Below are positions 3,001-64,000 of a stretch of DNA of 64,000 nt, piece after piece. The stretch's first letter is position 1, and each line of letters starts with the position of its first letter. The stretch is from Pseudomonas aeruginosa PAO1 (GTDB lineage Bacteria; Pseudomonadota; Gammaproteobacteria; Pseudomonadales; Pseudomonadaceae). The stretch is taken from assembly GCF_000006765.1 (NCBI RefSeq), contig NC_002516.2. The stretch is one strand, 5' to 3'. The position numbers and the translations under genes were made by a program. A model generated the notes under the pieces. The model was given only the letters and a program-made list of their open reading frames with translations. It searched no databases and was not told the origin of the DNA.

Positions 3001-4697
3001 TGGCGCCCGACATGGCCGCCTGGCTGGAGGCGGTCCAGGGACTGGGGAGCGAGCAGATCCGGGTGCTCAGCCCGCAGGCTTCGAGCCTGGCCGGGTGCCT
3101 CAACCTCTGCGTGGCCGAGGCCCGAGGCGAATTCCTCCTGTCGTTGGGGGCGGGGGTCGTGGCCCTTCGTCCGGACTGGTTGCGCGAGTTGCTCAACCAC
3201 GGCCGCCGCCCGGAGGTCGGGGCGGTCGGCGGCAAGCTCCTGGGCCTGGACGGAACGATTCGCGAGGCGGGCCTGGTGCTTGGCCTGGGCGGCACGGCGG
3301 GCCGCGCGTTCGCCGGCGAGGCGGGAGACAGCGCCGGCTACATGCATCGCCTGCTGGTCGTCCAGAATCACACGGCTCTGTCGGCTTCCTGCCTGTTGTT
3401 CAAGCGCTCGCTGCACGACGAACTCGGCGGCTTCGACGAGAACGACTTCGCTCATGGCCACGCCGACGTCGATTTCAGCCTGCGTGCCCGCCAGCTCGGC
3501 TACCTGTCGGTGTGGACGCCCTATGCAATCCTGGCCCAGAACGGAAACGTCGAGCTGCCTTCCGTGGAGGCCGATGAGTCGCTCTACCGGCGCTGGCTAC
3601 CGGCATTGGCGCGGGATCCCGCGTACAACCGCAATCTCAGCCTGGAGGGGGCCGGGTTCGCCCTGGAGCGCCCCGAGGTACCGGCCTGGCAACCGCTGTT
3701 CGGACGGTCGCCGCTGCCGCGGGTCCTGGCGCATCCTGCCGATCCCTACGGTTGTGGCCACTATCGCGTGCGTCAGCCGTTCCGCGCGCTGCACGACGCC
3801 GGCCTGCTGGACGGCATGCTCAGCGAGTCGCTCCTGCAGCCGGTGGCGTTGGAGCGCCTGGAGGTCGACAGCGTGATTCTCCAGCGGCAGATCAGCGAAG
3901 AGCAGTTGCGGGCCATTTCCCGGATGCGGTCGTTCAACCGCGCCTTCCGGGTCTACGAACTGGACGACTATCTGCCCGAGCTGCCGCTGAAGAGCCTGCA
4001 TCGGGCCGAGATGCCCGGCGACATTCGCCAGATCCTCGGTCGTGCCCTGGGCCTGGCGGACCGTTTCGTGGTCTCGACCGAACCGTTGGCGGAGGCATTC
4101 CGGCGCATGCACGGGGACATCCGGGTCGTGCCGAACCGCCTTCCGTTGCCCTGGTGGCGCGACCTTTCCAGTCGGCGCCGGGACGCAGAGCGGCCACGGG
4201 TCGGATGGGCCGGCGGGATCGGCCATGGCGGCGATCTCGAGGTGATCGCCGAGGTCGTGCGCGAGCTGGCGGACGAGGTGGACTGGGTGTTCTTCGGATT
4301 CTGCCCGGATGCCTTGCGTCCCTATGTGCGCGAATACCATCCGGGGGTGGAGATCGAACGCTATCCCGCCTACCTGGCCAGCCTCGACCTTGATCTCGCC
4401 CTGGCGCCGTTGGAGCAGAACCGCTTCAACGAGTGCAAGAGCAACCTGCGCCTCCTGGAGTACGGCGTGCTCGGCTTCCCGGTGATCTGCAGCGACGTGC
4501 TTTGCTATCGCGACAGTCTCCCGGTCACGCGGGTGAAGAACCGTTCCAGGGACTGGCTGGAGGCGATCCGCGCGCACCTGGCCGATGCAGACGCCAACGC
4601 CGCGGCCGGCGCGCAGTTGCGCGAGGCGGTGCGCCGCGACTGGATGCTCGAAGGCGCGCATCTCGAGGCATGGGCGGCAGCCTGGCTGCCGGACTGA
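3..4697 (+). CDS. fgtA: Flagellin glycosyltransferase FgtA (5'-truncated; TagF-like phosphotransferase domain, GT2 domains and a C-terminal GT-B-like domain)
   Basis: Frame is open from the window start. TagB/TagF-like motifs (FAPTY, IKPHP, ADILLADRSSLIFEF..LDRP) and GT2 motifs (YSDED, AVGGKLL..DGTIREAG, DVDFSLR). Lies directly upstream of b-type fliC. Confidence 0.92.
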   Translation, partial: SLGLRQVAELRLGAPDDGGRQRVLQLFRQDLAVARMQRYSGLRVACYGNMPFHYRSLRPLAECFEDSLLSLDIDEVMAWKPDVIAVADGWSVEFWRDYCDAHNVLLVGMRHGSVTRYGFAEGTYRYADYLCGSAWDIDDTLASSVMPRNGFLLTGNAWCDEVFRLPARTPAENAPTILFAPTYNPEISAAVHLGERVVALIRKVYPASRIIIKPHPAIVQHEHAFVSDKDLFRDLMKLWREQSRTDPLVTLVDDPEASIAASFAEADILLADRSSLIFEFMTLDRPILLFSREQRIARWAYNPEAPGNAWRDIGLEFADDEQLLDLLANAFTRHAESRDTQENRTQQLYGRFRDGRSVQRVAAAIAEAPRLQIVLDARAAADGGQRLAEHYAACFAHRRIDLIAPSGAALPADVRRFDSWRAWCDAEAATLERRASAVLLVEDDGQLLPGSAHQVSALLPAIAMGQLRHARLALEEREAGPAGETDWSARRLHRLLARLQPKPAWRLLAPALLREELADLPDEAEQPLWLRAVAAAEAPVEWPVGQLNLFAEEGLLRQGDVHMLCARARLRAVPCVSGLPLRQRQVVLQVTPFASQLYDRFPFQLRVCLNGQLFSRVSVEDARAKSLVLPFRGDERGGMTIELECDGSYPAFEGVSTPVSLLLQTAFQPAPGDYCAALAAGAASPEAGEDLRSEYETWLHGREVEPARYRPFIDALRRDSRIEVLVLAEEAEDADLQRSLASIDGQALPAWRTRILGRAPAFARKGLAWLAEGGSAAERINLAAAASDADWLIVIHAGDELARSALLLLAEKIRTETALLCCYSDEDHVCDGRYEAPLLKPDFNLDLLRSYPYCGRSLAFQRAALLAQGGLQEGFGDLALQDFMFRLAEREGLDRIGHLAEVLYHSARAFGEWLASAAVRPFIASVVDEHLNRLGVPHRIEPGRLAVINRIAYDYPGTPAVSLLLPVGDSLSALQRSVESFLENTDYPSYELLLVASGPLAPDMAAWLEAVQGLGSEQIRVLSPQASSLAGCLNLCVAEARGEFLLSLGAGVVALRPDWLRELLNHGRRPEVGAVGGKLLGLDGTIREAGLVLGLGGTAGRAFAGEAGDSAGYMHRLLVVQNHTALSASCLLFKRSLHDELGGFDENDFAHGHADVDFSLRARQLGYLSVWTPYAILAQNGNVELPSVEADESLYRRWLPALARDPAYNRNLSLEGAGFALERPEVPAWQPLFGRSPLPRVLAHPADPYGCGHYRVRQPFRALHDAGLLDGMLSESLLQPVALERLEVDSVILQRQISEEQLRAISRMRSFNRAFRVYELDDYLPELPLKSLHRAEMPGDIRQILGRALGLADRFVVSTEPLAEAFRRMHGDIRVVPNRLPLPWWRDLSSRRRDAERPRVGWAGGIGHGGDLEVIAEVVRELADEVDWVFFGFCPDALRPYVREYHPGVEIERYPAYLASLDLDLALAPLEQNRFNECKSNLRLLEYGVLGFPVICSDVLCYRDSLPVTRVKNRSRDWLEAIRAHLADADANAAAGAQLREAVRRDWMLEGAHLEAWAAAWLPD

Positions 4698-4717
4698 ATC
4701 CGGGTTTTTCTCGAACG

Positions 4718-4748
4718 AGGCCGGTGGCGCAAGCCATCGGCCTTTTTT
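4718..4748 (+). terminator. Intrinsic terminator after fgtA
   Basis: AGGCCGGTGGC-GCAA-GCCATCGGCCT followed by TTTTT; GNRA loop. Confidence 0.85.
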
Positions 4749-4780
4749 CATGCCCGGCGTGCCCTGTTGCACGGGAGGGC

Positions 4781-4807
4781 TAAAGAAAATCGCCGGGGGG
4801 TCGATGC
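4781..4807 (+). promoter_or_regulatory. Candidate second, upstream sigma28 (FliA) promoter
   Basis: TAAA-N15-GTCGATGC versus consensus TAAA-N15-GCCGATAA; exact spacing, 5/8 in the -10 box. Confidence 0.45.
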
Positions 4808-4936
4808 AATGGGTGTCGGAACTTCCACCCTCTGCCGGACCAACCGGGGGCGGTTCAGGACCGATATTGGCGAGTCCTCTTCGAAGCATGTAACCCACTG
4901 AAGAGGAAGAGAAAAAGAAAATGTTGATTTTTTCTC

Positions 4937-4963
4937 TAAAGCTCCGCCGGGAAACGCCGATAA
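4937..4963 (+). promoter_or_regulatory. sigma28 (FliA) promoter of fliC
   Basis: Perfect TAAA(G)-N15-GCCGATAA about 95 nt upstream of the fliC ATG. Confidence 0.93.
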
Positions 4964-5057
4964 ACACCATGAACGCGAATTCTTGGGGCACCTGAGCAAG
5001 CAGGCCGAGAGATCGCAAGCTCAGGTAACCGAAATAGGTCCTTTGGAGGAAATCACC

Positions 5058-6524
5058 ATGGCCCTTACAGTCAACACGAACATTGCTTCCCTGAACACTC
5101 AGCGCAACCTGAATGCTTCTTCCAACGACCTCAACACCTCGTTGCAGCGTCTGACCACCGGCTACCGCATCAACAGTGCCAAGGACGATGCTGCCGGCCT
5201 GCAGATCTCCAACCGCCTGTCCAACCAGATCAGCGGTCTGAACGTTGCCACCCGCAACGCCAACGACGGCATCTCCCTGGCGCAGACCGCTGAAGGTGCC
5301 CTGCAGCAGTCCACCAATATCCTGCAGCGTATCCGCGACCTGGCCCTGCAATCCGCCAACGGCTCCAACAGCGACGCCGACCGTGCCGCCCTGCAGAAAG
5401 AAGTCGCTGCGCAACAGGCCGAACTGACCCGTATCTCCGATACCACCACCTTCGGTGGCCGCAAGCTGCTCGACGGCTCCTTCGGCACCACCAGCTTCCA
5501 GGTCGGTTCCAACGCCTACGAGACCATTGACATCAGCCTGCAGAATGCCTCTGCCAGCGCCATCGGTTCTTACCAGGTCGGCAGCAACGGCGCGGGTACC
5601 GTCGCCAGCGTAGCGGGCACCGCGACCGCTTCGGGCATCGCCTCGGGCACCGTCAACCTGGTCGGTGGCGGTCAGGTGAAGAACATCGCCATCGCCGCCG
5701 GCGATAGCGCCAAGGCCATCGCCGAGAAGATGGACGGTGCGATCCCGAACCTGTCGGCTCGTGCCCGTACCGTGTTCACCGCTGATGTCAGCGGCGTGAC
5801 CGGTGGTTCGCTGAACTTCGACGTAACCGTTGGCAGCAACACCGTGAGCCTGGCAGGCGTGACCTCCACTCAGGATCTGGCCGACCAACTGAACTCCAAC
5901 TCGTCGAAGCTGGGCATCACTGCCAGCATCAACGACAAGGGTGTACTGACCATCACCTCCGCTACCGGCGAGAACGTCAAGTTCGGTGCGCAGACCGGTA
6001 CCGCTACTGCCGGTCAGGTCGCAGTGAAGGTCCAGGGTTCCGACGGCAAGTTCGAAGCGGCCGCCAAGAACGTGGTAGCTGCCGGTACTGCCGCTACCAC
6101 CACCATCGTGACCGGCTACGTGCAACTGAACTCGCCGACCGCCTACTCGGTCAGCGGTACCGGCACCCAGGCTTCGCAGGTCTTCGGCAACGCCAGCGCC
6201 GCGCAGAAGAGCAGCGTTGCCAGCGTCGACATCTCCACTGCCGACGGCGCCCAGAACGCCATCGCGGTAGTCGATAACGCCCTGGCTGCGATCGACGCCC
6301 AGCGTGCTGACCTCGGTGCTGTTCAGAACCGCTTCAAGAACACTATCGACAACCTGACCAACATCTCGGAAAACGCTACCAACGCTCGTAGCCGCATCAA
6401 GGACACCGACTTCGCTGCCGAAACCGCGGCGCTGTCGAAGAACCAGGTGCTGCAACAGGCCGGTACCGCGATCCTGGCCCAGGCCAACCAGCTGCCGCAG
6501 GCGGTCCTGAGCCTGCTGCGCTAA
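5058..6524 (+). CDS. fliC: b-type flagellin FliC, 488 aa
   Basis: [19 protein letters not shown]-terminus, [15 protein letters not shown]-terminus; GGAGG SD before ATG 5058; 488 aa fits the b type. Confidence 0.99.
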
Positions 6525-6552
6525 GCCCGGGAACGGTCACTCACGCGGTACT

Positions 6553-6582
6553 GGGAGGAAGGGGTGACCCTTCCTCCCTTTT
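6553..6582 (+). terminator. Terminator-like hairpin after fliC
   Basis: GGGAGGAAGGG-GTGA-CCCTTCTCCC followed by TTTTT. Confidence 0.75.
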
Positions 6583-6602
6583 CCCTTTGCGAGGCATGAG
6601 AA

Positions 6603-6974
6603 ATGGACGTCGGAAATATCACTTCCCTTTCTACGTTCAAGACCGGCAGGGCCCCGGAGGCCAGCGGCGATATCTTTGCGCCGCGCAGCGCAGCGGATGG
6701 CAGCGGCAAACCGTTGCCGGAAGTGACGGCTTCCCGGGAGGCCAGCGAATCTCGCGATGACCTGGGGCTCGCCGTCAGCGACATCCAGTCTTTCGTGCAG
6801 AGCGTCAAGCGCAACTTGAACTTCAGCATCGACGACTCCTCTGGCCAGGTCGTGGTCAAGGTGATCGACGGTGACTCGGGCGAAGTCGTGCGGCAAATCC
6901 CTTCCGAAGAAGTACTAAAACTTGCCGCCCGGCTCGACGACGTACACAGTGTCCTGTTCGAAACCCGCGCCTGA
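6603..6974 (+). CDS. flaG: FlaG family flagellar protein
   Basis: 123 aa with LNFSIDDSSGQVVVKVIDGDSGEVVRQIPSEE FlaG motif, between fliC and fliD. Confidence 0.9.
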   Translation: MDVGNITSLSTFKTGRAPEASGDIFAPRSAADGSGKPLPEVTASREASESRDDLGLAVSDIQSFVQSVKRNLNFSIDDSSGQVVVKVIDGDSGEVVRQIPSEEVLKLAARLDDVHSVLFETRA

Positions 6975-6992
6975 CGCGCGGGTTGAACGACT

Positions 6993-7007
6993 TGGCATGG
7001 TGCTTGC
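6993..7007 (+). promoter_or_regulatory. sigma54 -24/-12 promoter of fliD
   Basis: TGGCAT-GGTGC-TTGC (GG-N10-GC). Confidence 0.8.
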
Positions 7008-7059
7008 CCTATCGAAGGGATAGGGCAGTACATGCACGGTTTTTTGACGGAGATGGATT

Positions 7060-8484
7060 ATGGCCGGTATCTCGATAGGAGTAGGCTCGACCGATTACAC
7101 CGATCTGGTGAACAAGATGGTGAACCTGGAGGGCGCGGCTAAGACCAACCAGCTCGCCACCCTGGAGAAGACCACCACTACTCGTCTCACTGCCCTGGGC
7201 CAGTTCAAGAGTGCGATCAGCGCGTTCCAGACGGCGCTCACGGCGCTGAACAGCAATGCTGTGTTCATGGCGCGCACCGCCAAGTCTTCCAACGAAGACA
7301 TTCTCAAGGCGAGCGCCACCCAGAGCGCGGTGGCTGGCACCTACCAGATCCAGGTCAACAGCCTTGCCACCAGCAGCAAGATTGCCCTCCAGGCCATCGC
7401 CGATCCGGCCAATGCCAAGTTCAACAGCGGTACGCTGAACATCTCCGTCGGCGACACCAAGCTGCCGGCGATCACCGTCGACTCCAGCAACAACACGCTG
7501 GCCGGCATGCGTGACGCCATCAATCAGGCCGGCAAGGAAGCGGGCGTCAGCGCCACCATCATTACCGACAACTCCGGCTCGCGTCTGGTGCTGAGCAGCA
7601 CCAAGACCGGCGACGGCAAGGACATCAAGGTCGAGGTCAGCGATGACGGCAGCGGCGGCAATACGTCGCTCAGTCAACTGGCCTTCGATCCCGCGACGGC
7701 TCCCAAGCTCAGCGACGGCGCCGCTGCCGGCTACGTGACCAAGGCGGCAAACGGTGAAATCACCGTCGACGGCCTCAAGCGCAGCATCGCCTCCAACAGC
7801 GTGAGCGACGTCATTGACGGCGTCAGCTTCGACGTGAAAGCCGTCACCGAAGCCGGCAAGCCGATCACCCTGACTGTTTCCCGGGACGATGCCGGGGTGA
7901 AGGACAACGTCAAGAAGTTCGTCGAGGCCTACAACACCCTCACCAAGTTCATCAACGAACAGACCGTGGTGACCAAGGTCGGCGAAGACAAGAATCCGGT
8001 CACTGGTGCTCTGCTCGGCGATGCCTCCGTCCGTGCGCTGGTCAACACCATGCGCAGCGAACTGATCGCCTCCAACGAGAACGGCAGCGTACGCAACCTT
8101 GCCGCCCTCGGAATCACCACGACCAAGGACGGTACGCTGGAGATCGACGAGAAGAAGCTCGACAAGGCGATCAGCGCCGACTTCGAAGGCGTTGCCAGCT
8201 ACTTCACCGGCGATACCGGCCTGGCCAAGCGCCTGGGCGATAAGATGAAGCCCTACACCGACGCCCAGGGGATTCTCGACCAGCGCACCACGACCTTGCA
8301 GAAGACCCTCAGCAACGTCGACACGCAGAAGGCTGATCTGGCCAAGCGGCTGGCGGCGCTGCAGGAGAAACTGACCACTCAGTTCAACCTGCTTTCCGCG
8401 ATGCAGGATGAAATGACCAAGCGTCAGAAGAGCATCACGGACAACCTCGCCAGCCTGCCTTACGGCAGCGGCAAGAAGACCTGA
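7060..8484 (+). CDS. fliD: Flagellar filament cap FliD (HAP2), b-type, 474 aa
   Basis: HAP2 N- and C-terminal motifs; position after flaG. Confidence 0.97.
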   Translation: MAGISIGVGSTDYTDLVNKMVNLEGAAKTNQLATLEKTTTTRLTALGQFKSAISAFQTALTALNSNAVFMARTAKSSNEDILKASATQSAVAGTYQIQVNSLATSSKIALQAIADPANAKFNSGTLNISVGDTKLPAITVDSSNNTLAGMRDAINQAGKEAGVSATIITDNSGSRLVLSSTKTGDGKDIKVEVSDDGSGGNTSLSQLAFDPATAPKLSDGAAAGYVTKAANGEITVDGLKRSIASNSVSDVIDGVSFDVKAVTEAGKPITLTVSRDDAGVKDNVKKFVEAYNTLTKFINEQTVVTKVGEDKNPVTGALLGDASVRALVNTMRSELIASNENGSVRNLAALGITTTKDGTLEIDEKKLDKAISADFEGVASYFTGDTGLAKRLGDKMKPYTDAQGILDQRTTTLQKTLSNVDTQKADLAKRLAALQEKLTTQFNLLSAMQDEMTKRQKSITDNLASLPYGSGKKT

Positions 8485-8545
8485 TTCGCTGGCTGGCGGT
8501 GCGGCCCAAGGCCGTATCGCCGGCAAAAAAACCTCCCGCCCACCG

Positions 8546-8572
8546 TAAAGCTCCCGCGCTCCTTGCCGATAA
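8546..8572 (+). promoter_or_regulatory. Internal sigma28 promoter upstream of fliS
   Basis: Perfect TAAA(G)-N15-GCCGATAA; shares TAAAGCTCC with the fliC promoter. Confidence 0.85.
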
Positions 8573-8605
8573 CTTGGTCATAGCGAAGCCCACTGGGAGC
8601 GGTCC

Positions 8606-8986
8606 ATGTACGCGATGAAAGCGATGAAGCAATACCAGCAGGTCAGCATCGAGGCTCAGGTTTCCGATGCCAACCCGCACCGTCTGATCCAACTGCTCAT
8701 GCAGGGTGGTCTGGAGCGTCTGGCCCAGGCGCGTGGTGCGATGGAGCGGGAGCAGATCCCGGAAAAGGGGATCCTGATCGGCAAGGCCATCGGCATCATC
8801 GGCGGCCTTCGCGAAGCGCTGGACAGCGAGCGTGGTGGCGAGCTAGCCGGCAATCTGGATCGTCTCTACGAGTACATGATCGCTCGTCTGGTCGAGGCCA
8901 ATACCAGCAACGATACCAGCCTGCTAGACGAAGTCAGCGCCCTGTTGTTGGAAGTGAAGTCCGGTTGGGACGGTATTTCGCACTGA
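8606..8986 (+). CDS. fliS: Flagellin export chaperone FliS
   Basis: ANPHRLIQLLMQG and NLDRLYEYM FliS motifs; 126 aa. Confidence 0.95.
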   Translation: MYAMKAMKQYQQVSIEAQVSDANPHRLIQLLMQGGLERLAQARGAMEREQIPEKGILIGKAIGIIGGLREALDSERGGELAGNLDRLYEYMIARLVEANTSNDTSLLDEVSALLLEVKSGWDGISH

Positions 8987-55296: not shown

Positions 55297-56013
55297 CTAC
55301 TCGGGCACCTCGACGTTGACCTGTAGCGCGTCGTGGCGCCAGTACTCCAGGTCGCAGTCGATCAGGCGGCCCGCCTGGTCGCGGTTGACCCGCACGATCT
55401 GCAGCGCCGGGCTGCCCACCGAAACCCGCAGCGGCCCGGCGGCTTCCGCCGGGAGGATGGTCGGGACCATCTCGAAGCGCACCCGGCCGTAGCGGATGCC
55501 GTAGTGGTTGGCGTAGAGATCGGTCAGCGAGCGAGTCAGGTCGAAGCGCTCGATGCCGGGAAAGTAGGCGGGATTCAGGTAGTGCTCGACGTACAGCACC
55601 AGCCGCCCGTCGACCCGCCGCGCCCGGCGGATCTGGAACACCCGCGACAGCGCCGGCAGCTCCAGGCGCTGGCAGATGTCGACGCTGGCCGGGATCATCG
55701 CCGCGCCGAGCACCTCGGTCTCCGGCACCCGGCCCTGGTCGGCGACCATCGCGTGGAAGTGGCTGCGCACCAGCGGGTTGTACAGCAGCCGCTGCGGCGA
55801 GACGAACCAGCCGCGGCGTTCCTCGCGGTAGATCAGGCCCTGGTCCTCCAACTGGCCGAGCGCCTCGCGCAGGGTGATGCGGGTGGTCGAGAACAGCTCG
55901 CTCAATTGCCGTTCGCTGGGCAGCTTGCTGCCGCGCGCGAGCAGGCCGCGCTCGATCTGCTCGCGCAGGGACTGGTAGATCACCGTCAGGGGGCGGGACG
56001 GCTCGTCGCGCAT
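55297..56013 (-). CDS. GntR/HutC-family regulator with UTRA domain (PhnR-like)
   Basis: KLPSERQLSELFSTTRITLREAL wHTH; UTRA domain ending DCDLEYWRHD. Confidence 0.92.
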   Translation of the reverse strand: MRDEPSRPLTVIYQSLREQIERGLLARGSKLPSERQLSELFSTTRITLREALGQLEDQGLIYREERRGWFVSPQRLLYNPLVRSHFHAMVADQGRVPETEVLGAAMIPASVDICQRLELPALSRVFQIRRARRVDGRLVLYVEHYLNPAYFPGIERFDLTRSLTDLYANHYGIRYGRVRFEMVPTILPAEAAGPLRVSVGSPALQIVRVNRDQAGRLIDCDLEYWRHDALQVNVEVPE

Positions 56014-56094
56014 ATCGACGCTTCTCCGCTGGGGCTCCGGGGGGCTACAGGGTAATGCTTCCGGGCCGCCGGCGGTATAGCGCGGCGCGCCTTC

Positions 56095-56748
56095 TCAGCG
56101 CCATTCCAGCACTGGCCAGCCGGCCTCGCGGGCGTGCCCGAGCAGCGCCGGGTCGGGGTTCACCGTGTGCGGTCGGTCGACCCGCGAGAGCAGCGGCAGG
56201 TCGTTGCGCGAGTCGGAATAGAAGGTCGCGCCGGCCAGCGTCTCGCCCTCCTGGGCCAGCCAGGCGTCGAGGCGACGGACCTTGCCCTCGCGGTAGGTGA
56301 GGGTGCCGCGGGTGCGCCCGGTGTAGAGGCCGTCGCGCTCCTCGAGGTCGATCGCCAGCACCTCGTCCACCCCCAGCCGGCGGCCGATGGCGCTGACCAG
56401 GAAGTGCGCCGAGGCGGAGATGATCAGCAGGCGGTCGCCGGCCTGGCGGTGGCGTTCCAGGCAGCGCAGGGCGTCGGCGTGGATGCGCGGCGCTATGATC
56501 CGCGCGACGAAATCCTCGACGGCGCCGGCGATCTCCGCCGGGGTGCGGCCGGCGATGGGCGCCAGGCTGAAGTCCATGTAGTCCTCCATGGCCAGCCGGC
56601 CCTCGGCATAGAGTTCCATGAGGCGGCGTTCCTGGTGCAGGAAGGCGGTCTTCTCGACCCAGCCCAGTTCGGTCATGTAGCGCCCCCAGAGGGTCGCGCA
56701 GTCGCCGTCGATCAGGGTGTCGTCGAGGTCGAAGAGGGCAAGTGGCAT
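56095..56748 (-). CDS. HAD-IB (SerB-like) phosphatase, 217 aa
   Basis: FDLDDTL motif I, IISAS motif II, GK motif III, YSDSRNDLPLL motif IV. Confidence 0.92.
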   Translation of the reverse strand: MPLALFDLDDTLIDGDCATLWGRYMTELGWVEKTAFLHQERRLMELYAEGRLAMEDYMDFSLAPIAGRTPAEIAGAVEDFVARIIAPRIHADALRCLERHRQAGDRLLIISASAHFLVSAIGRRLGVDEVLAIDLEERDGLYTGRTRGTLTYREGKVRRLDAWLAQEGETLAGATFYSDSRNDLPLLSRVDRPHTVNPDPALLGHAREAGWPVLEWR

Positions 56749-56815
56749 AGGCGGTTCCTTGTTCGCTAGGGATTGGCCCGGCACGCCTGGCGCCGGGCGG
56801 TGGTTCGGCGAGGTT

Positions 56816-58150
56816 TCAACGCGGCTTGCCGGCCGCCAGCAGCGGCCCGCTGGCATGCGCCTTCGGTTCGACGCGGCACGCGCCTGGCCGGCTGTTCCAG
56901 AACGGCACCAGCAGCAGGCTGGCGAGCAGCGCGGTGGCGGTGAACACGAAGAACACCGTGAGGGTGTCGAAGTAGCCCGGCAGCAGGCCGCCGAGGATCG
57001 CCCCGACCGAGCCGCAGCCGTTGACGAAGCCGGTGGCGGTACCGGCTGCTTCGCTGGTACCGAAGTCGATGGCGGCGGCGCCGCTGATCATCGAGTCCGG
57101 CCCGTAGAGGGTGACGCCCATCATGAACAGCAGGCTGACCACCAGGTACAGGCTGCCGCTCTGCATCGCCGGGACGAACAGCGCCAGGCTCAGGGTCAGC
57201 GCCGCCAGGCTGAGCACGCAGGCCGGCATGCGGCGGGCGCCGAACAGCTTGTCCGAGGCCAGGCCGATGAGGATCGGCCCGGCCAGCCCGGCGACCTCGA
57301 AGGCCGAAGGCACGATGGCCGAGGCGACCTTGCCGATCTCCGGCATGCGTTCGTAGATGATCACCGGGCCCCAGAGCAGGATCGCGTAGCGCGCCGGCTT
57401 GAGCAGGAAGTAGGCGATGCCGAGGACCAGCACGTGGGGATTCCTGAGCGCCTTCAGCAGGGCGCCGGAATGGCTCGGCCGGGGCGCGTTGGCGGGGGGC
57501 GCGGCCTCGGCCTCCACGGGCGGCAGGCCGACGTCCTGCGGACGGTTGCGCTGGAGGAAGAAGAACAGCACGGCCACCGCCAGCACCACTCCCGCCGAGG
57601 ACAGGAAGGCCATGCGCCAGTCATGCGTCAACCGGTAGGCGCACCAGCCGGCGAACGGCGTCGCCACCAGCCCGCCGAAGGCGTAGCAGGTACTCCACAG
57701 GCCGAGCACGCGGCCTCGCTCGTAGGTGGCGAAGAAGGCGCCGATGTTCTTGCACAGCCCCGACCAGCCGGTGGACTGCGCCAGGCCCTGGACCACCATG
57801 CAGGCGGCGAAGATCGGCAGGGTGGCGAAGGTACCCATCATCAGCGCCGCCAGCGCCGAGGTGAGCAAACCGCCGAGCACCACCACGCGGGTGCCGAAGC
57901 GGTCGGCGAACACCCCCCACATGAACTGGCCCACGGCGTAGGCGGCCAGGTAGAGGGCATCGAGATCGGCCATGGCGCTCTTGTCGAGCTCGAAGGAGGG
58001 GTCTTCGGCGATGCCGAGCTTGGCCACCGAGAAGGCCTTGCGGGTGAAGTAGAAGGCGGCGTAGGCCAGCCAGGTGATGACGAAGATCTGGATGCGCCAG
58101 CGCTGGAGCGATTGCCAGCCACGGTGCAGGGTACCGTTGTGGTTGTTCAT
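56816..58150 (-). CDS. OPA-family (GlpT/UhpT-like) MFS antiporter, 444 aa
   Basis: AFYFTRKAFSVAK, YAVGQF, QSTGWSG...W, ERGRVLGLWSTCYAFGG, GFVNGCGSVG. Confidence 0.9.
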   Translation of the reverse strand: MNNHNGTLHRGWQSLQRWRIQIFVITWLAYAAFYFTRKAFSVAKLGIAEDPSFELDKSAMADLDALYLAAYAVGQFMWGVFADRFGTRVVVLGGLLTSALAALMMGTFATLPIFAACMVVQGLAQSTGWSGLCKNIGAFFATYERGRVLGLWSTCYAFGGLVATPFAGWCAYRLTHDWRMAFLSSAGVVLAVAVLFFFLQRNRPQDVGLPPVEAEAAPPANAPRPSHSGALLKALRNPHVLVLGIAYFLLKPARYAILLWGPVIIYERMPEIGKVASAIVPSAFEVAGLAGPILIGLASDKLFGARRMPACVLSLAALTLSLALFVPAMQSGSLYLVVSLLFMMGVTLYGPDSMISGAAAIDFGTSEAAGTATGFVNGCGSVGAILGGLLPGYFDTLTVFFVFTATALLASLLLVPFWNSRPGACRVEPKAHASGPLLAAGKPR

Positions 58151-58162
58151 GTGGGTCCCTAT

Positions 58163-58534
58163 GGGTCTAGACAGTGCGGGGAGGTTGTTCTTGTTGTGCT
58201 GCTGCAAAGCTGTCCGGATGCATGGTCTAGGCCAGATGCCTTTCCCATGACTTTTTTCGTGCGCAAGGTTGGCTGTCGACGCGCTCCTGCTCGGTCCTGC
58301 CGAGGCTGAGATGGATTGTGAAGGCTTGGTGGCGGTGCGTGGCGCCGATCCGGTCAGGCTGGGCCGGCTGGCGAAGGTCAATCTAGCACCGGGTATTTTT
58401 ATGGTCTAGACCAAAAGCGGGGCGAAACGATTCGATTTTTTCGAGGGATTGCCTGGGATTGGTGCATTTTCTTGTCCTGGCGGCACCTTTTGGCGGGACT
58501 TTTCTACGTATTTTCAAGAAATTGGAATAGACCA
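58163..58534. promoter_or_regulatory. Four TGGTCTAGACCA-type GntR/HutC operators
   Basis: 58163 GGGTCTAGACAG (9/12), 58223 TGGTCTAGGCCA (11/12), 58402 TGGTCTAGACCA (12/12), 58523 TGGAATAGACCA (10/12). Confidence 0.8.
58380..58408 (-). promoter_or_regulatory. Predicted sigma70-type promoter of the OPA transporter operon
   Basis: Minus strand TAGACC-N17-TAGATT with extended TGn; the -35 lies inside the perfect operator. Confidence 0.55.
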
Positions 58535-58643
58535 GATTTTCGATGATACGCCAGCGCCTCTGGTGCGCCGTGCGCCGCCGCTGGATGGCCGCGTGTCGCG
58601 GCGCTCGGCTAGACTGCGGGACCTCGCGCCGGATCGGACCGCC

Positions 58644-59546
58644 ATGCTGAGAAACGTCACCGACCTAGACCTGCGTCTGTTGCGCATCTTCGCCTGCGTG
58701 GTGAAGTGCGGCGGTTTCACCGCGGCCCAGGCCGAGCTGAACATGAGCCAGTCGAACATCAGCATGCACATCGCCAGCCTGGAGAAGCGCCTCGGCTACC
58801 GGCTCTGCGAGCGCGGCAAGGGCGGTTTCCGACTGACCGCCAAGGGTCGCCGGGTGCTGGAGGCTTCGCGAACGATGTTCGACGCCATCGGCCTATTTCG
58901 CGACCAGGCGCAGGCGTTGTCCGGACGTTTGGTCGGGGAGCTGTACCTGGGCCTCGCGGACAATCTCGCGACCTTGCCCCAGGCCCGTTTCGGCGATGCG
59001 CTGGCGCGCTTCCAGCGGCGCGACCAGGATGTCCAACTGAACCTTTTCGTCAATTCGCCCACCGAGCTGGAACTGGCGGTGATCGAAGGCGAGCTGGACC
59101 TGGCGATCTCCTATTTCAGCCGTTCGCGGCCGAGCCTCGAATACCGCCCGCTGTATCGCGAAGAGATCGGCGTGTTCTGCGGCGATCGCCATCCGCTGTT
59201 CGCCGAGGCGCAGCCGACCCTGGAGCGGATCGCCGCCTGTGACTGGGTGATGCACGGCTTTCTGCCGGAAAACCTGGTCCTGCCGCTACGCCCGTCGCGC
59301 AGCCGCGCCACCGCCTACCACATGGAAGCGGTCGCCCATGCCGTGCTGGCCGGCACCCACCTGGGCTACCTGCCGACCCATTACGCCGAAGCCTGGATCG
59401 AGCGTGGGCGGATGCGCGCGCTGTTGCCGGAGCGGCTGAGCTACCCGGTGGAGCACAGCATGATCGTCTATGCCGGGCGCCCCCTCAGCGAAGCCGCCCG
59501 CGCCTTCATCGACGACCTGCTGCAGGTCCACGGCCTGGCGTCCTGA
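58644..59546 (+). CDS. LysR-family regulator, 300 aa
   Basis: DLDLRLLRIF...GGFTAAQAELNMSQSNISMHIASLEKRLG. Confidence 0.95.
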   Translation: MLRNVTDLDLRLLRIFACVVKCGGFTAAQAELNMSQSNISMHIASLEKRLGYRLCERGKGGFRLTAKGRRVLEASRTMFDAIGLFRDQAQALSGRLVGELYLGLADNLATLPQARFGDALARFQRRDQDVQLNLFVNSPTELELAVIEGELDLAISYFSRSRPSLEYRPLYREEIGVFCGDRHPLFAEAQPTLERIAACDWVMHGFLPENLVLPLRPSRSRATAYHMEAVAHAVLAGTHLGYLPTHYAEAWIERGRMRALLPERLSYPVEHSMIVYAGRPLSEAARAFIDDLLQVHGLAS

Positions 59547-59550
59547 GCGC

Positions 59551-60732
59551 TCAGGCGAGAGTCCCGGCCACCGCCTGGCGGTAGATGCGCGCATAATCCC
59601 GGGCATCGAGCGGCAGGGCGTTGGTCGCCGAGGACGACAGGTCGGCCAGCGCCTGCTCGCCCACCCATTGCGCGTCCTCGCCATCCAGGCCGAGGGCGGC
59701 GAGGTTCGCCGGGATGCCGATGCGCGCGCGCAGTTCGAGGATCCACGCCAGCAGGCCGTCGAAGCTCGCTTCGTCGAGTTCCAGGTAGCGCGCCAGGCGC
59801 GCGGCGTCGGCTTCTATCGCCGGGCGGTTGGCCAGCAGAACGTAGGGCAGCAGCACGGCGTTCAGCAGGCCGTGGTGCAGGTGATGGCGAGCGCCCAGCG
59901 GGTGGGCCAGGGCGTGGACCCCGCCAAGCCCCTTCTGGAATGCCACCGCGGCGCTGGCCGAGGCTACCAGCATGCCTTCCCGGGCGGCGAGGTCGTTGCC
60001 GTCGCGCACGGCGTTTTCCAGGTGCTGCCTGACCAGGCGCACGCCTTCCAGGGCGATGCCCGCCGACATCGGATGGTAGAGCGGCGAGAACAGCGCCTCC
60101 AGGTGATGGGTGAGGGCGTCCATGCCGGTGGCGGCGCTCAGCGCCGGCGGCAACCCGCGGGTCAGGCGCGGGTCGAGGAATACGCAGGCGGCCAGCAGCT
60201 CGCGATGGCCGACCACCCGCTTGATGCCCAGTTGTGTGTCGGTCAGCACCGCCTCGCGTCCCAGTTCCGAGCCGGTGCCGGCGGTCGTGGGCAGCGCCAG
60301 CAGCGGCGGCAGGCCGAGCGGCGGGTAGTCGGCGAGGGTCGGATAGCTGCGCAGCGTCTGTGTCCATTCGAAGCGTTCGAGTCCGTGCGGATCGCGGCTG
60401 AGCAGGGCGATTCCCTTGGCCGCGTCGAGGGCGCTGCCGCCGCCGAGGGCGATCAGCGCGTCATGCCCGCCAGCCTCGAAGCGCCTGGCGCCGCCCTGGA
60501 CTTCAGCGAGGCTGGGGTTGCTCGACAGTTCGTGGAACAGGTCATGGTCGATGCCGGCGCGTTCCAGGCATTCGCGCACCAGGCGCAGGGGCTCCAGGGC
60601 GCGCATGCCGGGATCGGTGACCAGCAGGGGCCGGCGTGCGCCCGCCAGCGCGCAACGCCTCGGCAGTTGTTCCAGGGCGCCGACGCCGCAGAGGATATCG
60701 GTGGGGTAGTTCCAGTAATGCAGGTCGCTCAT
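59551..60732 (-). CDS. Iron-containing alcohol dehydrogenase, 393 aa
   Basis: GGGSALDAAK, PTTAGTGSE, GMDALTHHLE, HALAH and HHG metal ligands. Confidence 0.95.
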   Translation of the reverse strand: MSDLHYWNYPTDILCGVGALEQLPRRCALAGARRPLLVTDPGMRALEPLRLVRECLERAGIDHDLFHELSSNPSLAEVQGGARRFEAGGHDALIALGGGSALDAAKGIALLSRDPHGLERFEWTQTLRSYPTLADYPPLGLPPLLALPTTAGTGSELGREAVLTDTQLGIKRVVGHRELLAACVFLDPRLTRGLPPALSAATGMDALTHHLEALFSPLYHPMSAGIALEGVRLVRQHLENAVRDGNDLAAREGMLVASASAAVAFQKGLGGVHALAHPLGARHHLHHGLLNAVLLPYVLLANRPAIEADAARLARYLELDEASFDGLLAWILELRARIGIPANLAALGLDGEDAQWVGEQALADLSSSATNALPLDARDYARIYRQAVAGTLA

Positions 60733-60833: not shown

Positions 60834-62324
60834 TCAGTCCGCCGGCGGAGCGGCGAAGCTGAGGCTGGTGGCGATGCGCCGATGCGGCTTGGCGATGACC
60901 ATGTAGAGCAGGCCGAACGCGGCCAGCGCGGAGAACACCACGACCACCGCCCAGACCTGGAACCAGGGCGCGTCGGGCGGGGCGAGGCTGGCCCGCGGCC
61001 AGGCGACGTTGAGCGCCTCGAACGACAGCCAGGCGACTGCCAGGACGTTCACCGCCAGCCCCGCGCGCCCCAGGCGCAAGGCGCCCTTGTCCGGGTCCCA
61101 GCGGCCGACGAGGCGGGCCCAGAGAGCGCAGGCGGCGACGATCAGGAAGACCACGAAGAAACCGCCGCTGCCGAACGCGATCAGCGTGCCGACCGCCGTG
61201 GCGTTCAGCCCCAGGGCCAGGCCGAGGCTGGCCAGCAGCGTGCTGCAGACCATCGCCGCCATCGGCACCTTGCGCCGGTCGACCCGGCGCAGCAGGGCGG
61301 AGCCGGGCAGGATGGCGTCGCGCGCCATGCCGAAGATCGCCCGGCCGATGTAGGTCTGCACCGACACCACGCAGGCGACGAAGGCGATCAGCACCACTGC
61401 GACGAAGGGCCGCTCGGCCCAGGCGCCGAAGGCGTCCACCACCGCCGGGGTGACCGGGTCGACCACCTGGCCGCTGACCACCGCGCCGATGTCCTGGTAG
61501 GACAGGGTCACGGCGAAGGCGGTGAGCATCACGGTGAATCCCACCACCAGCATCGAGCGCAGGATCGCCCGGGGAGTGGAGACGCGGGCATCGGTGGTTT
61601 CCTCGGAAATCTGCGAGCAGGCGTCGAAGCCGAGGAAAGCCCAGCCGCCCACCGCCAGCGCGGTCAGCACGCCGTCCAGGTAGGAACCGTCCGCATCGCC
61701 TGTGCCGCCCGGGCCGCTGAACAGCAGATCGAGCGGATGGTTGCGGAAGAACAGCAGCAACAGCACGCCGATACCGATGGAGGCGATGGCCTCGGCGACG
61801 ATCCCGGCATTGACGAAGTACTTCAACGGGTTGATCCCCAGCAGGTTCACCGCCAGTCCCAGCGCCAGCAGCAGCGCGCCGCAGAGCACCTGGCCGTTGG
61901 CCGACGGCGGCGCGCCGGTCGCCAGCAGGCCGAGCCAGAAGCCACCGAGGTAGGCCACGGTAGTCAGCGAGGCCAGCGCCGAAGCCAGGTAGAGGAAGCC
62001 GGTGAACCAGGCCAGGCGGTCGCCCACCAGGCGCCGCACCCACTGGTAGCAGCCGCCGGCCAGCGGAAACTGCGAGGACAGCTCGGCGTAGACCAGCGCC
62101 ACGCCGAACTGCAGCAGCAGGCACAGCGGCACCACCCAGACCCAGGAGGGGCCCATGCTCATGGCGCCGAGGGACATCACCGAGTAGATGCCCACCACCG
62201 GCGAGATGGTAGCGAAGCCGACGGAAAAGGACGACCACAGGCTCAGCCCGCGCTCCAGTTCCTGGCGATAGCCGTGGGCCGCCAGCAGGCGTTCGTCGCG
62301 GGAGGTATCGCGGAGATCAGTCAT
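60834..62324 (-). CDS. APC-family amino acid/amine permease, 496 aa
   Basis: GYRQELERGLSLWSSFSVGF, AELSSQFPLAGG.Y.W, GFDACSQISEET. Confidence 0.95.
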   Translation of the reverse strand: MTDLRDTSRDERLLAAHGYRQELERGLSLWSSFSVGFATISPVVGIYSVMSLGAMSMGPSWVWVVPLCLLLQFGVALVYAELSSQFPLAGGCYQWVRRLVGDRLAWFTGFLYLASALASLTTVAYLGGFWLGLLATGAPPSANGQVLCGALLLALGLAVNLLGINPLKYFVNAGIVAEAIASIGIGVLLLLFFRNHPLDLLFSGPGGTGDADGSYLDGVLTALAVGGWAFLGFDACSQISEETTDARVSTPRAILRSMLVVGFTVMLTAFAVTLSYQDIGAVVSGQVVDPVTPAVVDAFGAWAERPFVAVVLIAFVACVVSVQTYIGRAIFGMARDAILPGSALLRRVDRRKVPMAAMVCSTLLASLGLALGLNATAVGTLIAFGSGGFFVVFLIVAACALWARLVGRWDPDKGALRLGRAGLAVNVLAVAWLSFEALNVAWPRASLAPPDAPWFQVWAVVVVFSALAAFGLLYMVIAKPHRRIATSLSFAAPPAD

Positions 62325-62477
62325 GGCGGTCTCCGGGCGAGCGCTGCGGGGAAGGGGAAAGGCGGATGCCACCGATGCGATGGGTGAGCATGGAGAGTCC
62401 TCGTCGGCTATTGGAATTGTTATGGCCGCTTCCGGGACGAGCGAAAGCGTGGCAGACGCAGGTTAGGCGGATTACCT

Positions 62478-62583: not shown

Positions 62584-64000
62584 TTACTTCAGGTCCTCGC
62601 GCGGCGGTTTGCCGGGCTGGCTGGCGTAGTCCGGCAGGGCGCTGATCGCCTGTTCCTTGTCGGGGATGCTGGACGGGTCGAGGTCGCCGCCGACGTTGCG
62701 CGGGTCGGTGGGGATCGCCGAGGGAATCACCACGGTGCGCTCGGCCAGCGGCCAGCCGAGAATGGTCTCCAGGCGCCCGCCTTCCTCCTCGGGGCCGGTG
62801 ATGGCGTCCAGGCGCAGCGGCAGCGGATGGCCGATCAGCCGTTCGACCTCGCCCGCCGCCTCCGGCGCGGCCAGGGTCAGGCCGGTGCGGTAGAAGCCCG
62901 GCAGACTCGAGCGCGGCACATAGACCCGCAGCAGGGCACCGTTGCGGATCCGGCCGCGCGCGTCGGGTTCCTGGTCCTGGGCGTAGCCGTAGGCCAGCGC
63001 CGGATCGCCGGCGATATAGAAACCGCGCCAGATCGCGTCGAGGTCCTGGCTGCGCGCGCGCACCCCGCCGAAGACGATGCTTTGCGCCGCTTCGAGGAAG
63101 GTGCCGTGGTAGCCGACGAACACATAGCCGCGCTCCTCCAGTTGGCGGTGCGCCTGGAGCAGCCGCTCCACCGTCCAGTTCTGCGTGCCGCGGGTGCTGA
63201 AGCTGATGTCGCCGCCGTCGCCGAGGAACTCCGCGCCAGTGGGATAGTTGCGCTCCAGCAGGGCGTCGCCGCTGTCCGCCGGGCCCGCGCATTCACCGGC
63301 GGCGACCGGGCAGGTCAGGCTCACCACGTCGGCGCTGGCCGCGCCGGCCTCGTCGTTGCCTGTGCCCTGCCGGACGAAGCGCTCGCTCTCGGCGGCGGCC
63401 AGGGTCAGGGCCAGACGGGCCTGCTCCGGCTGCTCGCGGATCGCTTCGCCCAGGTCGCCGCCGCTGCCGGGGCTGGCCAGGGCGTTGCGGATCACCTGGT
63501 CGACCTGGTTCCACGACAGCCGCGCCGCCAGGTAGAGGGCGACCAGCCGCTGCACCGGATAGCCGCACTGCTCCAGTTGTTCCCAGCCGCGCGGCTGGCG
63601 ATGACGGGTGAAGGTCTCCAGCGGCAGGTGGCAGGCCTGGTGCGCGGTCAGCGCGGCCAGGCTGCCGCCCTCGGGGAAATGCAGGCGATGACTGATGACC
63701 GTGGGCTTGATGTCCAGGTCATGCTTCGCCGGGTTGCCGGCGAGCACCCGGTAGATCTTGCCTTCCCAGGTATCGTCGAGGTTGCAGCGCTGCTGGGCGA
63801 GGTAGTTGTAGACCCCGTCCAGCGGGTCGAGCAGGCACAACACCTTGCCGCTGGCCCATTCGCTCCAGCGCTTTTCCCGGCGCGGCTGGGCCTGGGCCAT
63901 GACCACGCTGACCCCGGCATGGCTGATGGCGAGCGTCGGCTGCATCTCGTTGCTCTCGTGCGCCCTGACGAAGAAGGTGGCATCGCGCGCCAGCTTCGCC
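62584..64000 (-). CDS. toxA: Exotoxin A, eEF2 ADP-ribosyltransferase (5'-truncated)
   Basis: Frame open to the window end (AKLARDATFFVRAHESNEMQPTL); furin site RHRQPRG, YHGT, RLETILGW catalytic Glu, C-terminal REDLK. Confidence 0.99.
   Translation of the reverse strand, partial: AKLARDATFFVRAHESNEMQPTLAISHAGVSVVMAQAQPRREKRWSEWASGKVLCLLDPLDGVYNYLAQQRCNLDDTWEGKIYRVLAGNPAKHDLDIKPTVISHRLHFPEGGSLAALTAHQACHLPLETFTRHRQPRGWEQLEQCGYPVQRLVALYLAARLSWNQVDQVIRNALASPGSGGDLGEAIREQPEQARLALTLAAAESERFVRQGTGNDEAGAASADVVSLTCPVAAGECAGPADSGDALLERNYPTGAEFLGDGGDISFSTRGTQNWTVERLLQAHRQLEERGYVFVGYHGTFLEAAQSIVFGGVRARSQDLDAIWRGFYIAGDPALAYGYAQDQEPDARGRIRNGALLRVYVPRSSLPGFYRTGLTLAAPEAAGEVERLIGHPLPLRLDAITGPEEEGGRLETILGWPLAERTVVIPSAIPTDPRNVGGDLDPSSIPDKEQAISALPDYASQPGKPPREDLK

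Follow-up and report, generated by a model that had tools for sequence, protein, structure and literature searches.

Four conserved repressor boxes precede an operon for a 2-aminoethylphosphonate-type transporter, a phosphatase and a PhnR-like repressor in Pseudomonas aeruginosa PAO1

A 64,000-nucleotide stretch of Pseudomonas aeruginosa PAO1 (contig NC_002516.2; hereafter the window, in which each position equals the PAO1 position minus 1,178,000) contains an operon, PA1144-PA1143-PA1142, that encodes a 2-aminoethylphosphonate (2AEP)-type transporter, a phosphatase and a PhnR-like repressor, and that is preceded by four conserved repressor boxes. We favor, with somewhat better than even confidence, the reading that PA1144-PA1142 is a substrate-inducible uptake operon of the 2AEP type under PhnR-type repression. 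All three genes lie on the minus strand. The first, PA1144 (56816-58150, 444 amino acids), is an open reading frame for a major facilitator superfamily (MFS) protein of the organophosphate:inorganic phosphate (Pi) antiporter type (PF07690, 165 bits), the second, PA1143 (56095-56748, 217 amino acids), encodes a HAD-IB family phosphatase, and the third, PA1142 (55297-56013, 238 amino acids), encodes a PhnR-like GntR/HutC regulator with matches to PF00392, PF07702 and TIGR03337. Their lengths and spacing agree with the PAO1 coordinates in the supplement of a published regulator atlas (PMC8041468, supplementary file 11), which places PA1144 at 1234816-1236150 on the minus strand and its neighbor PA1145 at 1236644-1237546 on the plus strand. 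RefSeq names for the three products stay generic ("MFS transporter", "HAD family hydrolase" and "UTRA domain-containing protein"). A first-pass annotation, made from the sequence alone, had called a co-oriented organophosphate antiporter-family MFS protein, a HAD-IB phosphatase and a UTRA-GntR regulator, and the Pfam and NCBIfam matches bear these calls out; its description of the system as uncharacterized and without an assigned substrate did not survive, as the MFS protein appears to be of the AepP family, the regulator is PhnR-like and PA1143 is a published phosphatase (PMC12220765).

Four copies of the palindrome TGGTCTAGACCA, with 0, 1, 2 and 3 mismatches, lie at 58163-58534, 5' of the operon. 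The perfect copy, O1 (58402-58413), overlaps a -35-like TAGACC; O2 (58223-58234, one mismatch) lies in the leader, its center 78 nt 5' of the ATG; O3 (58163-58174, three mismatches, operon strand CTGTCTAGACCC) stands directly 5' of the ribosome-binding site; and O4 (58523-58534, two mismatches, operon strand TGGTCTATTCCA) is the upstream box. Counted from the putative transcription start, boxes O4, O1, O2 and O3 would lie near -155, -35, +145 and +205, respectively. The operator pattern of the HutC subfamily is a GT-N-TA-N-AC palindrome, and all four boxes have the core GTCTAGAC or a closely related one. HutC-type operators, one over the -35, two in a leader of about 220 nt and one upstream, were what the first-pass annotation had proposed, and both the palindromes and this arrangement are supported. 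At up to one mismatch the window holds two matches versus 0.02 expected, both in the intergenic region of the operon, and at up to two mismatches it holds eight versus 0.83 expected, three of them in that region. At up to three mismatches, four of 38 matches fall inside 400 bp, which by count alone gives p of about 0.06, so that O3, the weakest copy, stands on conservation and not on statistics. The tetranucleotide CTAG is strongly avoided in the window (26 observed versus about 194 expected from base composition), and six of the 26 occurrences lie in 58150-58700.

Conservation was judged in an alignment of the regulatory region from four species, comprising that of the window and those of P. 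paraeruginosa, Pseudomonas sp. BN417 and Pseudomonas sp. CR3202. All four boxes are kept upstream of the orthologues in each of the other three species, where they form islands of conservation between diverged flanks; the O3 block CACTGTCTAG and the adjoining ATAGGGACCC are identical throughout, and O4 is invariant in spite of differing upstream genes. The first-pass annotation had placed the fourth box toward the divergent LysR gene (PA1145), and the upstream position holds, while service to LysR is doubtful: we rejected O4 as an operator of PA1145, since it is kept in genomes that lack that LysR gene, and it is therefore better assigned to the PA1144 control region. Two CTAGAC half-sites near PA1145, one 35 nt 5' of its start codon (58609-58614) and one within its first codons (58665-58670), could be weak extra half-boxes or chance. 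Palindromes with two mismatches also occur within the PA1142 coding sequence (55458-55469 and 55884-55895), with similar near-matches in the orthologues of loci L001-L003, and probably follow from conserved codons and are not operators. O1 (1236401-1236414), O2 (1236222-1236235) and O4 (1236522-1236535) are already listed in a position weight matrix (PWM) scan of PAO1 (PMC8041468, supplementary file 11).

The substrate class is suggested by the transporter. PA1144 is 98% identical to the representative of a P. aeruginosa protein cluster. Among NCBIfam models it matches TIGR00881 best (210 bits), with UhpC and GlpT next, and all three scores fall short of the cutoffs set for these subfamilies; its solved-structure relatives are the SLC37 transporters and GlpT, and we assigned it to the organophosphate:Pi antiporter family. 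A scan of one genome per species gave 28 Pseudomonas-type MFS loci, and the tree of their MFS proteins has two clades, A (20 loci) and B (nine sequences, including that of the window), with a 29th sequence from P. hunanensis (L028), which lies in a LysR-MFS-oxidoreductase arrangement, basal to both. Within clade A, 18 of the 20 loci are organized as phnW-MFS-phnX, and the other two (L012 and L021) have only an aminophosphonate oxidoreductase gene beside the MFS gene, L012 together with a phn-type LysR gene; an oxidoreductase and a LysR gene are also carried by many of the phnW/phnX loci. These neighbors score above curated cutoffs (PhnW, 556 bits; PhnX, the phosphonatase, 326; TIGR03329, 806; phn_lysR, 399). 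In clade B a HAD-IB gene always follows the MFS gene, and no locus has phnW or phnX. The MFS proteins of the two clades are 71-77% identical, with 212 of 404 alignment columns invariant. A specificity shift between them was sought, and the search returned only four fixed differences in these 404 columns, all conservative (V286L, T365S, G370A and T373A), three of which cluster at residues 365-373. PA1144 is thus a close homologue, at 73-77% identity, of transporters that are encoded within 2AEP catabolic clusters at 20 loci.

The reference member of this group is AepP of P. putida BIRD-1, a GlpT-related organophosphate:Pi antiporter that has been shown genetically to be a 2AEP permease, is needed for phosphate-insensitive growth on 2AEP as nitrogen or carbon source, and is encoded beside genes for PhnWX, PhnWAY or other catabolic enzymes (PMC8316502). 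P. aeruginosa PA14 is stated to have homologues of both aepP and phnWX (PMC9311074). From gene context and these published statements, we infer that PA1144 is an AepP-family transporter, and family membership points to 2AEP, or a close 2-aminoethyl-phosphate analogue, as its probable substrate class, so that the statement that no substrate had been assigned is incorrect at the level of the family. One clade A-type locus, L006, is labeled Gordonia sp. IEGM753, an actinobacterium; its phnW-MFS-phnX arrangement is typical of the P. fluorescens group, its PhnW and PhnX are 90-91% identical to those of Pseudomonas, and it probably represents a mislabeled or contaminated assembly.

The regulator points in the same direction. 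PA1142 combines a GntR winged helix-turn-helix domain (PF00392, 68.2 bits, cutoff 27) with a UTRA domain (PF07702, 133 bits, cutoff 23.8), a chorismate-lyase fold that aligns over its full length to the structures of NagR and DasR. Its best family model is TIGR03337 (PhnR, "phosphonate utilization transcriptional regulator"; 286.3 bits), followed by PhnF at 117 bits, and its gene is co-oriented with that of an AepP-type transporter, phnW and phnX lying outside both the operon and the window. PA1142 is 42-46% identical to the PhnR proteins of Salmonella and Vibrio, with residues aligned to DNA contacts and to the ligand pocket invariant. Two guanines are read in the NagR-DNA structure by Arg38 and Arg48 (PMC4333415); these align to Arg35 and Arg45, which are invariant in PA1142, the orthologues of its paralogue PA3249, and Salmonella and Vibrio PhnR. 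Boxes of the same kind occur at genuine phnR loci, in Salmonella as TGGTCTATACCA between phnW and phnR and TGGTATAGGCCA before phnS, and in the phn intergenic regions of Vibrio as TGGTCTACACCA and TGGTACAGACCA, at phnW and phnS2; together with the boxes at PA3249-type loci, described below, they mark the palindrome as a family-wide PhnR box. NagR holds the phosphate of its ligand through Thr90, Arg133, Arg135 and Ser165-Tyr167. Arg133, Arg135 and Ser165 align to Arg130, Arg132 and Ser162 of PA1142, all three invariant across PhnR relatives, and the sugar-stacking Tyr167 aligns to Thr164. Retention of the arginines and the serine, with replacement of the tyrosine, fits a small phosph(on)ate ligand and not a sugar, and, judged from these alignments, a phosph(on)ate-bearing effector for PA1142 is plausible, in keeping with the phosphorylated effector that the first-pass annotation had expected of a UTRA domain.

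Homologues of PA1142 at 72-77% identity form a paralogue family, whose genes are divergent from another operon in P. citronellolis, S. stutzeri and P. aeruginosa. The products of that operon are a PF13343 binding protein, a member of the phosphodiesterase family about 268 amino acids long, two permeases, an ATPase and a second HAD-IB protein, and its neighbors minCDE, rluA and prc, together with the atlas coordinates, identify the module as PA3249/PA3250-PA3255 (positions 2447-8717 of locus L034). PA1142 and PA3249 are 74% identical, and PA1143 and PA3255 58%. A box is present in intergenic regions of the PA3249-PA3250 type in P. aeruginosa, P. citronellolis, S. stutzeri and Halomonas (L030-L034 and L042). 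PhnR-like genes were also met on plasmid records, of which that of Halomonas carries an ATP-binding cassette (ABC) transporter and phosphodiesterase module with boxes and without a HAD gene, and that of Roseomonas gives no informative context around the PhnR-like gene. PA1142 and PA3249 are nearly identical at the pocket stretches, and the same or very similar molecules are therefore probably sensed by both.

For transcription itself, the putative operon promoter is an extended -10-like element, TGcTAGATT (58380-58388, minus strand), set 17 nt after the TAGACC of O1, whose TG and TAGATT do not vary among the four species; if real, it would start transcription near 58373. The PA3250 promoter has a similar -10-like element, TAGATTGG, followed by a box. 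No Pho box was found in the regulatory region at up to four mismatches, and no sigma-54 promoter at up to two. Between O2 and O3 the leader contains the CA-rich AACAAGAACAAC (58184-58195, minus strand), which is invariant in the four species and has a similar counterpart beside the ribosome-binding site in the P. citronellolis and P. delhiensis loci. This sequence resembles the Hfq/Crc target motif of Pseudomonas catabolite repression, and it may be bound by Hfq/Crc. A candidate site of this type fits the finding that aepP-dependent growth of P. putida depends on CbrAB (PMC9311074), and the CA-rich motif, in a region without a Pho box, suggests control by carbon status rather than by phosphate starvation. 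We considered whether the roughly 220-nt leader might contain a riboswitch or an attenuator and rejected this, since it has no relevant Rfam match and folds no better than its shuffles (z = +1.7). The leader of all four species also conserves a hairpin, CTCGG-cagga-CCGAG, followed by a GAG-AGGAG block (58281-58305, minus strand), which is not followed by a start codon and has no Rfam match.

The mechanism that we propose draws on the gene families, the boxes and their conservation, the joint presence of box and regulator across the family, and the paralogous module, all observed here, and on published reports that AepP transports 2AEP, that PA3249 binds the 14-mer in vitro and that PA1143 is a phosphatase. 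PA1144 would exchange phosphate from inside the cell for external 2AEP or for a 2-aminoethyl-phosph(on)ate analogue very close to it. Without substrate, dimers of a PhnR-type HutC repressor (PA1142, PA3249 or both) would sit on the four boxes, with O1 covering the -35 and so blocking RNA polymerase, and O2 and O3 in the leader and O4 upstream adding cooperative or road-block repression, perhaps through looping. Binding of a phosph(on)ate effector to the UTRA domain would release the repressor, and the operon's inclusion of the regulator, as its last gene, would make the circuit autoregulated. PA1143 may hydrolyze a phosphate-ester congener, our best guess being phosphoethanolamine-like amino-alcohol phosphates, and thereby free Pi for antiport, and a true phosphonate would be handed to PhnW and PhnX encoded elsewhere in the genome.

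A number of observations weigh against this 2AEP-type, PhnR-controlled operon. Some of the proteins fall short of a curated cutoff: PA1144 does so on TIGR00881, and PA1142 and PA3249 (284.5 bits) narrowly miss the 296.75 bits of TIGR03337. A strict sigma-70 scan (at least 9 of 12 positions) calls no promoter, the TGcTAGATT candidate reaching 8 of 12 plus the extended -10, and it is therefore conservation that carries the proposed promoter. The aepP homologue was not differentially transcribed in the NtrBC transcriptome of PA14 (PMC9311074). The MFS-HAD loci of P. citronellolis and P. delhiensis have no box, and those of the P. guariconensis or P. putida type (L004, L005, L008 and L036-L039), in which a QhpR-like AraC-family gene precedes MFS-HAD, have one perfect box between the AraC and MFS genes and no GntR gene within 6 kb. 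Neither in PAO1 nor elsewhere in the HAD-linked clade is the MFS gene accompanied by genes for PhnWX, PhnWAY or another 2AEP catabolic route, a HAD-IB gene standing there instead, and a phosphatase is without an obvious job in phosphonate catabolism, the PhnW/PhnX route having no step for one. The chief piece of counter-evidence on the operon's own regulator concerns its published motif. By high-throughput SELEX (HT-SELEX), in which ligands are evolved systematically by exponential enrichment, PA1142 selects GCCCA-N5-7-TGGGC, in three spacings and with 2293 genome matches (PMC8041468), and no such site is present in 58100-58700 even at up to one mismatch.

These last results give substance to an alternative that we consider possible though doubtful, in which the main reader of the boxes is PA3249, or some other regulator that shares its specificity and is encoded elsewhere, and PA1142 regulates other genes through GCCCA-N5-7-TGGGC. 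The HT-SELEX motif of PA3249 is YTGGTCTAGACCAR, in two replicates, the same motif was obtained as CTGGTCTAGACCAG for PA0032, and PA3249 binds a phnC/amrZ intergenic fragment carrying such a box in an electrophoretic mobility shift assay (PMC8041468). Moreover, the retention of a box without a local GntR gene at the P. guariconensis-type loci means that a regulator encoded elsewhere can serve it. On the other side, the recognition helix (TTRITLREAL) and the wing (YREERRGWFV) are identical in PA1142 and PA3249, both of which have the guanine-reading arginines, and the four-box layout is found only where a GntR gene lies in cis, loci without one having a single box. The three spacings and 2293 matches of the PA1142 motif suggest to us low-specificity or independent half-site binding, and its half-site TGGGC is one base away from the TGGTC of the box. 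The proposal of the first-pass annotation that the cis-encoded GntR binds the palindromes is uncertain: the identical helix and wing speak for it, and the absence of the protein's own SELEX motif from the region speaks against it. Since that motif differs, the boxes may be read in vivo by PA1142, by PA3249 or by both, and cross-talk between the two is likely.

Returning to the 2AEP-type uptake operon, a second challenge concerns its substrate. The phosphatase neighbor, and the separate clade formed by HAD-linked MFS proteins, mean that the substrate may be an ester rather than 2AEP; in that case the clade would import a phosphate monoester such as phosphoethanolamine or phosphoserine, which PA1143 would dephosphorylate in the cytoplasm and which would itself be the inducer. 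This is the model of the first-pass annotation in a more specific form, and we regard it as unlikely, though worth setting out. PA1143 exceeds the cutoffs of TIGR01490 (173 bits, cutoff 98.3) and TIGR01488 (139 bits, cutoff 45), matches PF12710 (132 bits), and shows the catalytic motifs DLDDT, SAS, K and SDSRND in alignment to 3FVV, an uncharacterized protein that is its one close match among solved structures; it does not reach the cutoff of the Pseudomonas histidinol-phosphatase model NF052360 (228.9 bits, cutoff 280). Experimentally, it has phosphatase activity, all four motifs and a side activity as histidinol-phosphatase, and its over-expression rescues a histidinol-phosphatase mutant, with no role in growth when expressed from the native promoter, its dominant role being left unknown (PMC12220765). 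The ester reading is favored by the constant MFS-HAD-IB pairing without phnW or phnX throughout the clade, by the action of HAD-IB relatives on 2-amino-alcohol phosphates, the nearest named models being histidinol-phosphatase and phosphoserine phosphatase, by this mutant rescue, by a box 186 bp 5' of the phospholipase C gene plcN in the published PAO1 scan, and by the phosphodiesterase-family gene beside the HAD-IB gene of the paralogous module. What speaks against it is that the transporter differs from the clade of the 2AEP clusters at only the four conservative fixed positions, and that the pocket-aligned residues of the regulator are invariant with those of genuine Salmonella and Vibrio PhnR. 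The phosphatase may act on ester congeners built, like histidinol phosphate and phosphoserine, on a 2-aminoethyl-phosphate skeleton, with phosphoethanolamine as the simplest candidate, or the whole HAD-linked clade may have shifted to such esters.

It is very improbable that the boxes serve as dre sites in an amino-sugar regulon like those of NagR and DasR and that the operon handles sugar phosphates resembling N-acetylglucosamine (GlcNAc)-6-phosphate or glucosamine-6-phosphate. The palindromic dre site in the NagR-DNA structure has the same 12-mer as its core, and NagR and DasR are the closest solved structures, but PA1142 shares little identity with NagR (63 bits over 219 aligned residues), both Tyr167 and the wing residue Gly69 are replaced (by Thr164 and Arg66), there are no amino-sugar genes nearby, the NagR of P. 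aeruginosa itself (PA3757) has an unrelated HT-SELEX motif, and the best family match is PhnR. Least credible of all is that the palindromes are chance or a restriction-site-related oddity with no regulatory role, for which only the count at up to three mismatches speaks, against the two matches versus 0.02 expected at up to one mismatch, the contradicting conservation of all four boxes amid diverged flanks, and the presence of the box at paralogous and orthologous PhnR loci in five genera.

The operon may belong to a larger set of genes. As a proxy for a genome-wide box search, we used the published scan of PAO1 with the equivalent PWM CTGGTCTAGACCAG (PMC8041468, supplementary file 11), which, in addition to the plcN site, lists boxes 46 bp 5' of phnC, 103 bp 5' of the GntR gene PA2802 and 13 bp 5' of PA0539; these four sites offer a lead toward a wider regulon. 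A speculative extension, to which we give only a small chance of being right as a whole, makes the PhnR box the mark of a small regulon with which P. aeruginosa scavenges 2-aminoethyl-phosph(on)ate head groups from phospholipids and phosphonolipids of host or protozoan origin. PA1142 and PA3249 would cross-talk in it, respond to the same effector, and control PA1144-PA1143, PA3250-PA3255 and possibly plcN and the carbon-phosphorus (C-P) lyase operon, the scan placing a box at each of the last two (PMC8041468). If that were true, the HAD-IB enzymes would fill the place of missing cytoplasmic phosphatases of the phosphoethanolamine type, and would allow a phosphonate antiporter to feed on the ester as well.

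The remainder of the neighborhood runs toward toxA. Between the operon and toxA lie the divergent LysR gene PA1145 (58644-59546), a gene for an iron-containing alcohol dehydrogenase (59551-60714) and one for an APC-family permease (60834-62372). The frame at 62587-64000, on the minus strand and cut by the window end, matches three exotoxin A Pfam domains (binding, partial; targeting; catalytic) and represents the 3' portion of toxA, which lies about 4 kb from the operon. This nearness of a few kilobases appears incidental.

Several elements of this picture were already known singly. The AepP family was published in 2021, as were the box, as the motif selected by PA3249 in SELEX, and its sites at PA1144 in a genome scan; PA1143 was reported as a phosphatase in 2025. 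The literature that we searched holds no description of the operon as a unit, of the four-box architecture, of the paralogous twin, or of the specificity conflict of PA1142. Taken together, the analysis offers a likely substrate class and a concrete regulatory logic for three generically named P. aeruginosa genes, and shows AepP-type transporters in two contexts, one with PhnW/PhnX and a LysR activator and the other with a HAD-IB phosphatase and a PhnR-type repressor. The high-throughput motif of PA1142 conflicts with the prediction from comparative genomics, which matters to users of that atlas. In addition, a testable link is raised between the uptake of phosphonates and that of phospho-head-groups, through two paralogous repressors that share one box.

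Among known systems, the NagR (YvoA) regulator of Bacillus subtilis and DasR of Streptomyces share with PA1142 the HutC subfamily, an identical 12-mer core and the arginines that read guanines and hold the ligand phosphate; they differ in having an amino-sugar phosphate as effector and GlcNAc and chitin genes as regulon, and their sugar-stacking residue and wing glycine are not kept in PA1142. The PA3249/PA3250-PA3255 module (PMC8041468) has a similar regulator and HAD-IB protein and the same box, but it has an ABC transporter with a PF13343 binding protein and a phosphodiesterase-family enzyme, and PA3249 is encoded divergently, with its own box at its ribosome-binding site. The MFS genes of the phnW-MFS-phnX and LysR-MFS-oxidoreductase clusters, to which AepP of P. 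putida BIRD-1 (PMC8316502, PMC9311074) is linked by context, resemble PA1144 at 71-77% identity. Neither transporter appears to be under phosphate control, PA1144 having no Pho box and AepP being Pi-insensitive (PMC8316502), and a carbon-status layer is plausible in both, through the CA motif at PA1144 and CbrAB for AepP. AepP has PhnW/PhnX and a LysR activator (AepR) as neighbors, whereas PA1144 has a HAD-IB protein and a GntR/HutC repressor and falls in the separate, HAD-linked clade. With Salmonella enterica and Vibrio PhnR (TIGR03337; phnSTUV and phnWX), PA1142 shares the GntR and UTRA architecture and TGGT-N-TA-N-ACCA boxes at the regulated promoters; it lies 10 bits under the curated cutoff, its operon has an MFS antiporter and not an ABC system, phnW and phnX are missing, and PA1144 has four boxes versus one per promoter. 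PA1142 is thus not a strict member of the PhnR equivalog, being narrowly under the cutoff, and the operon is without the usual phnW/phnX neighbors of AepP; by analogy, it would work like a PhnR-controlled 2AEP uptake operon in which an AepP-type transporter replaces the ABC system.

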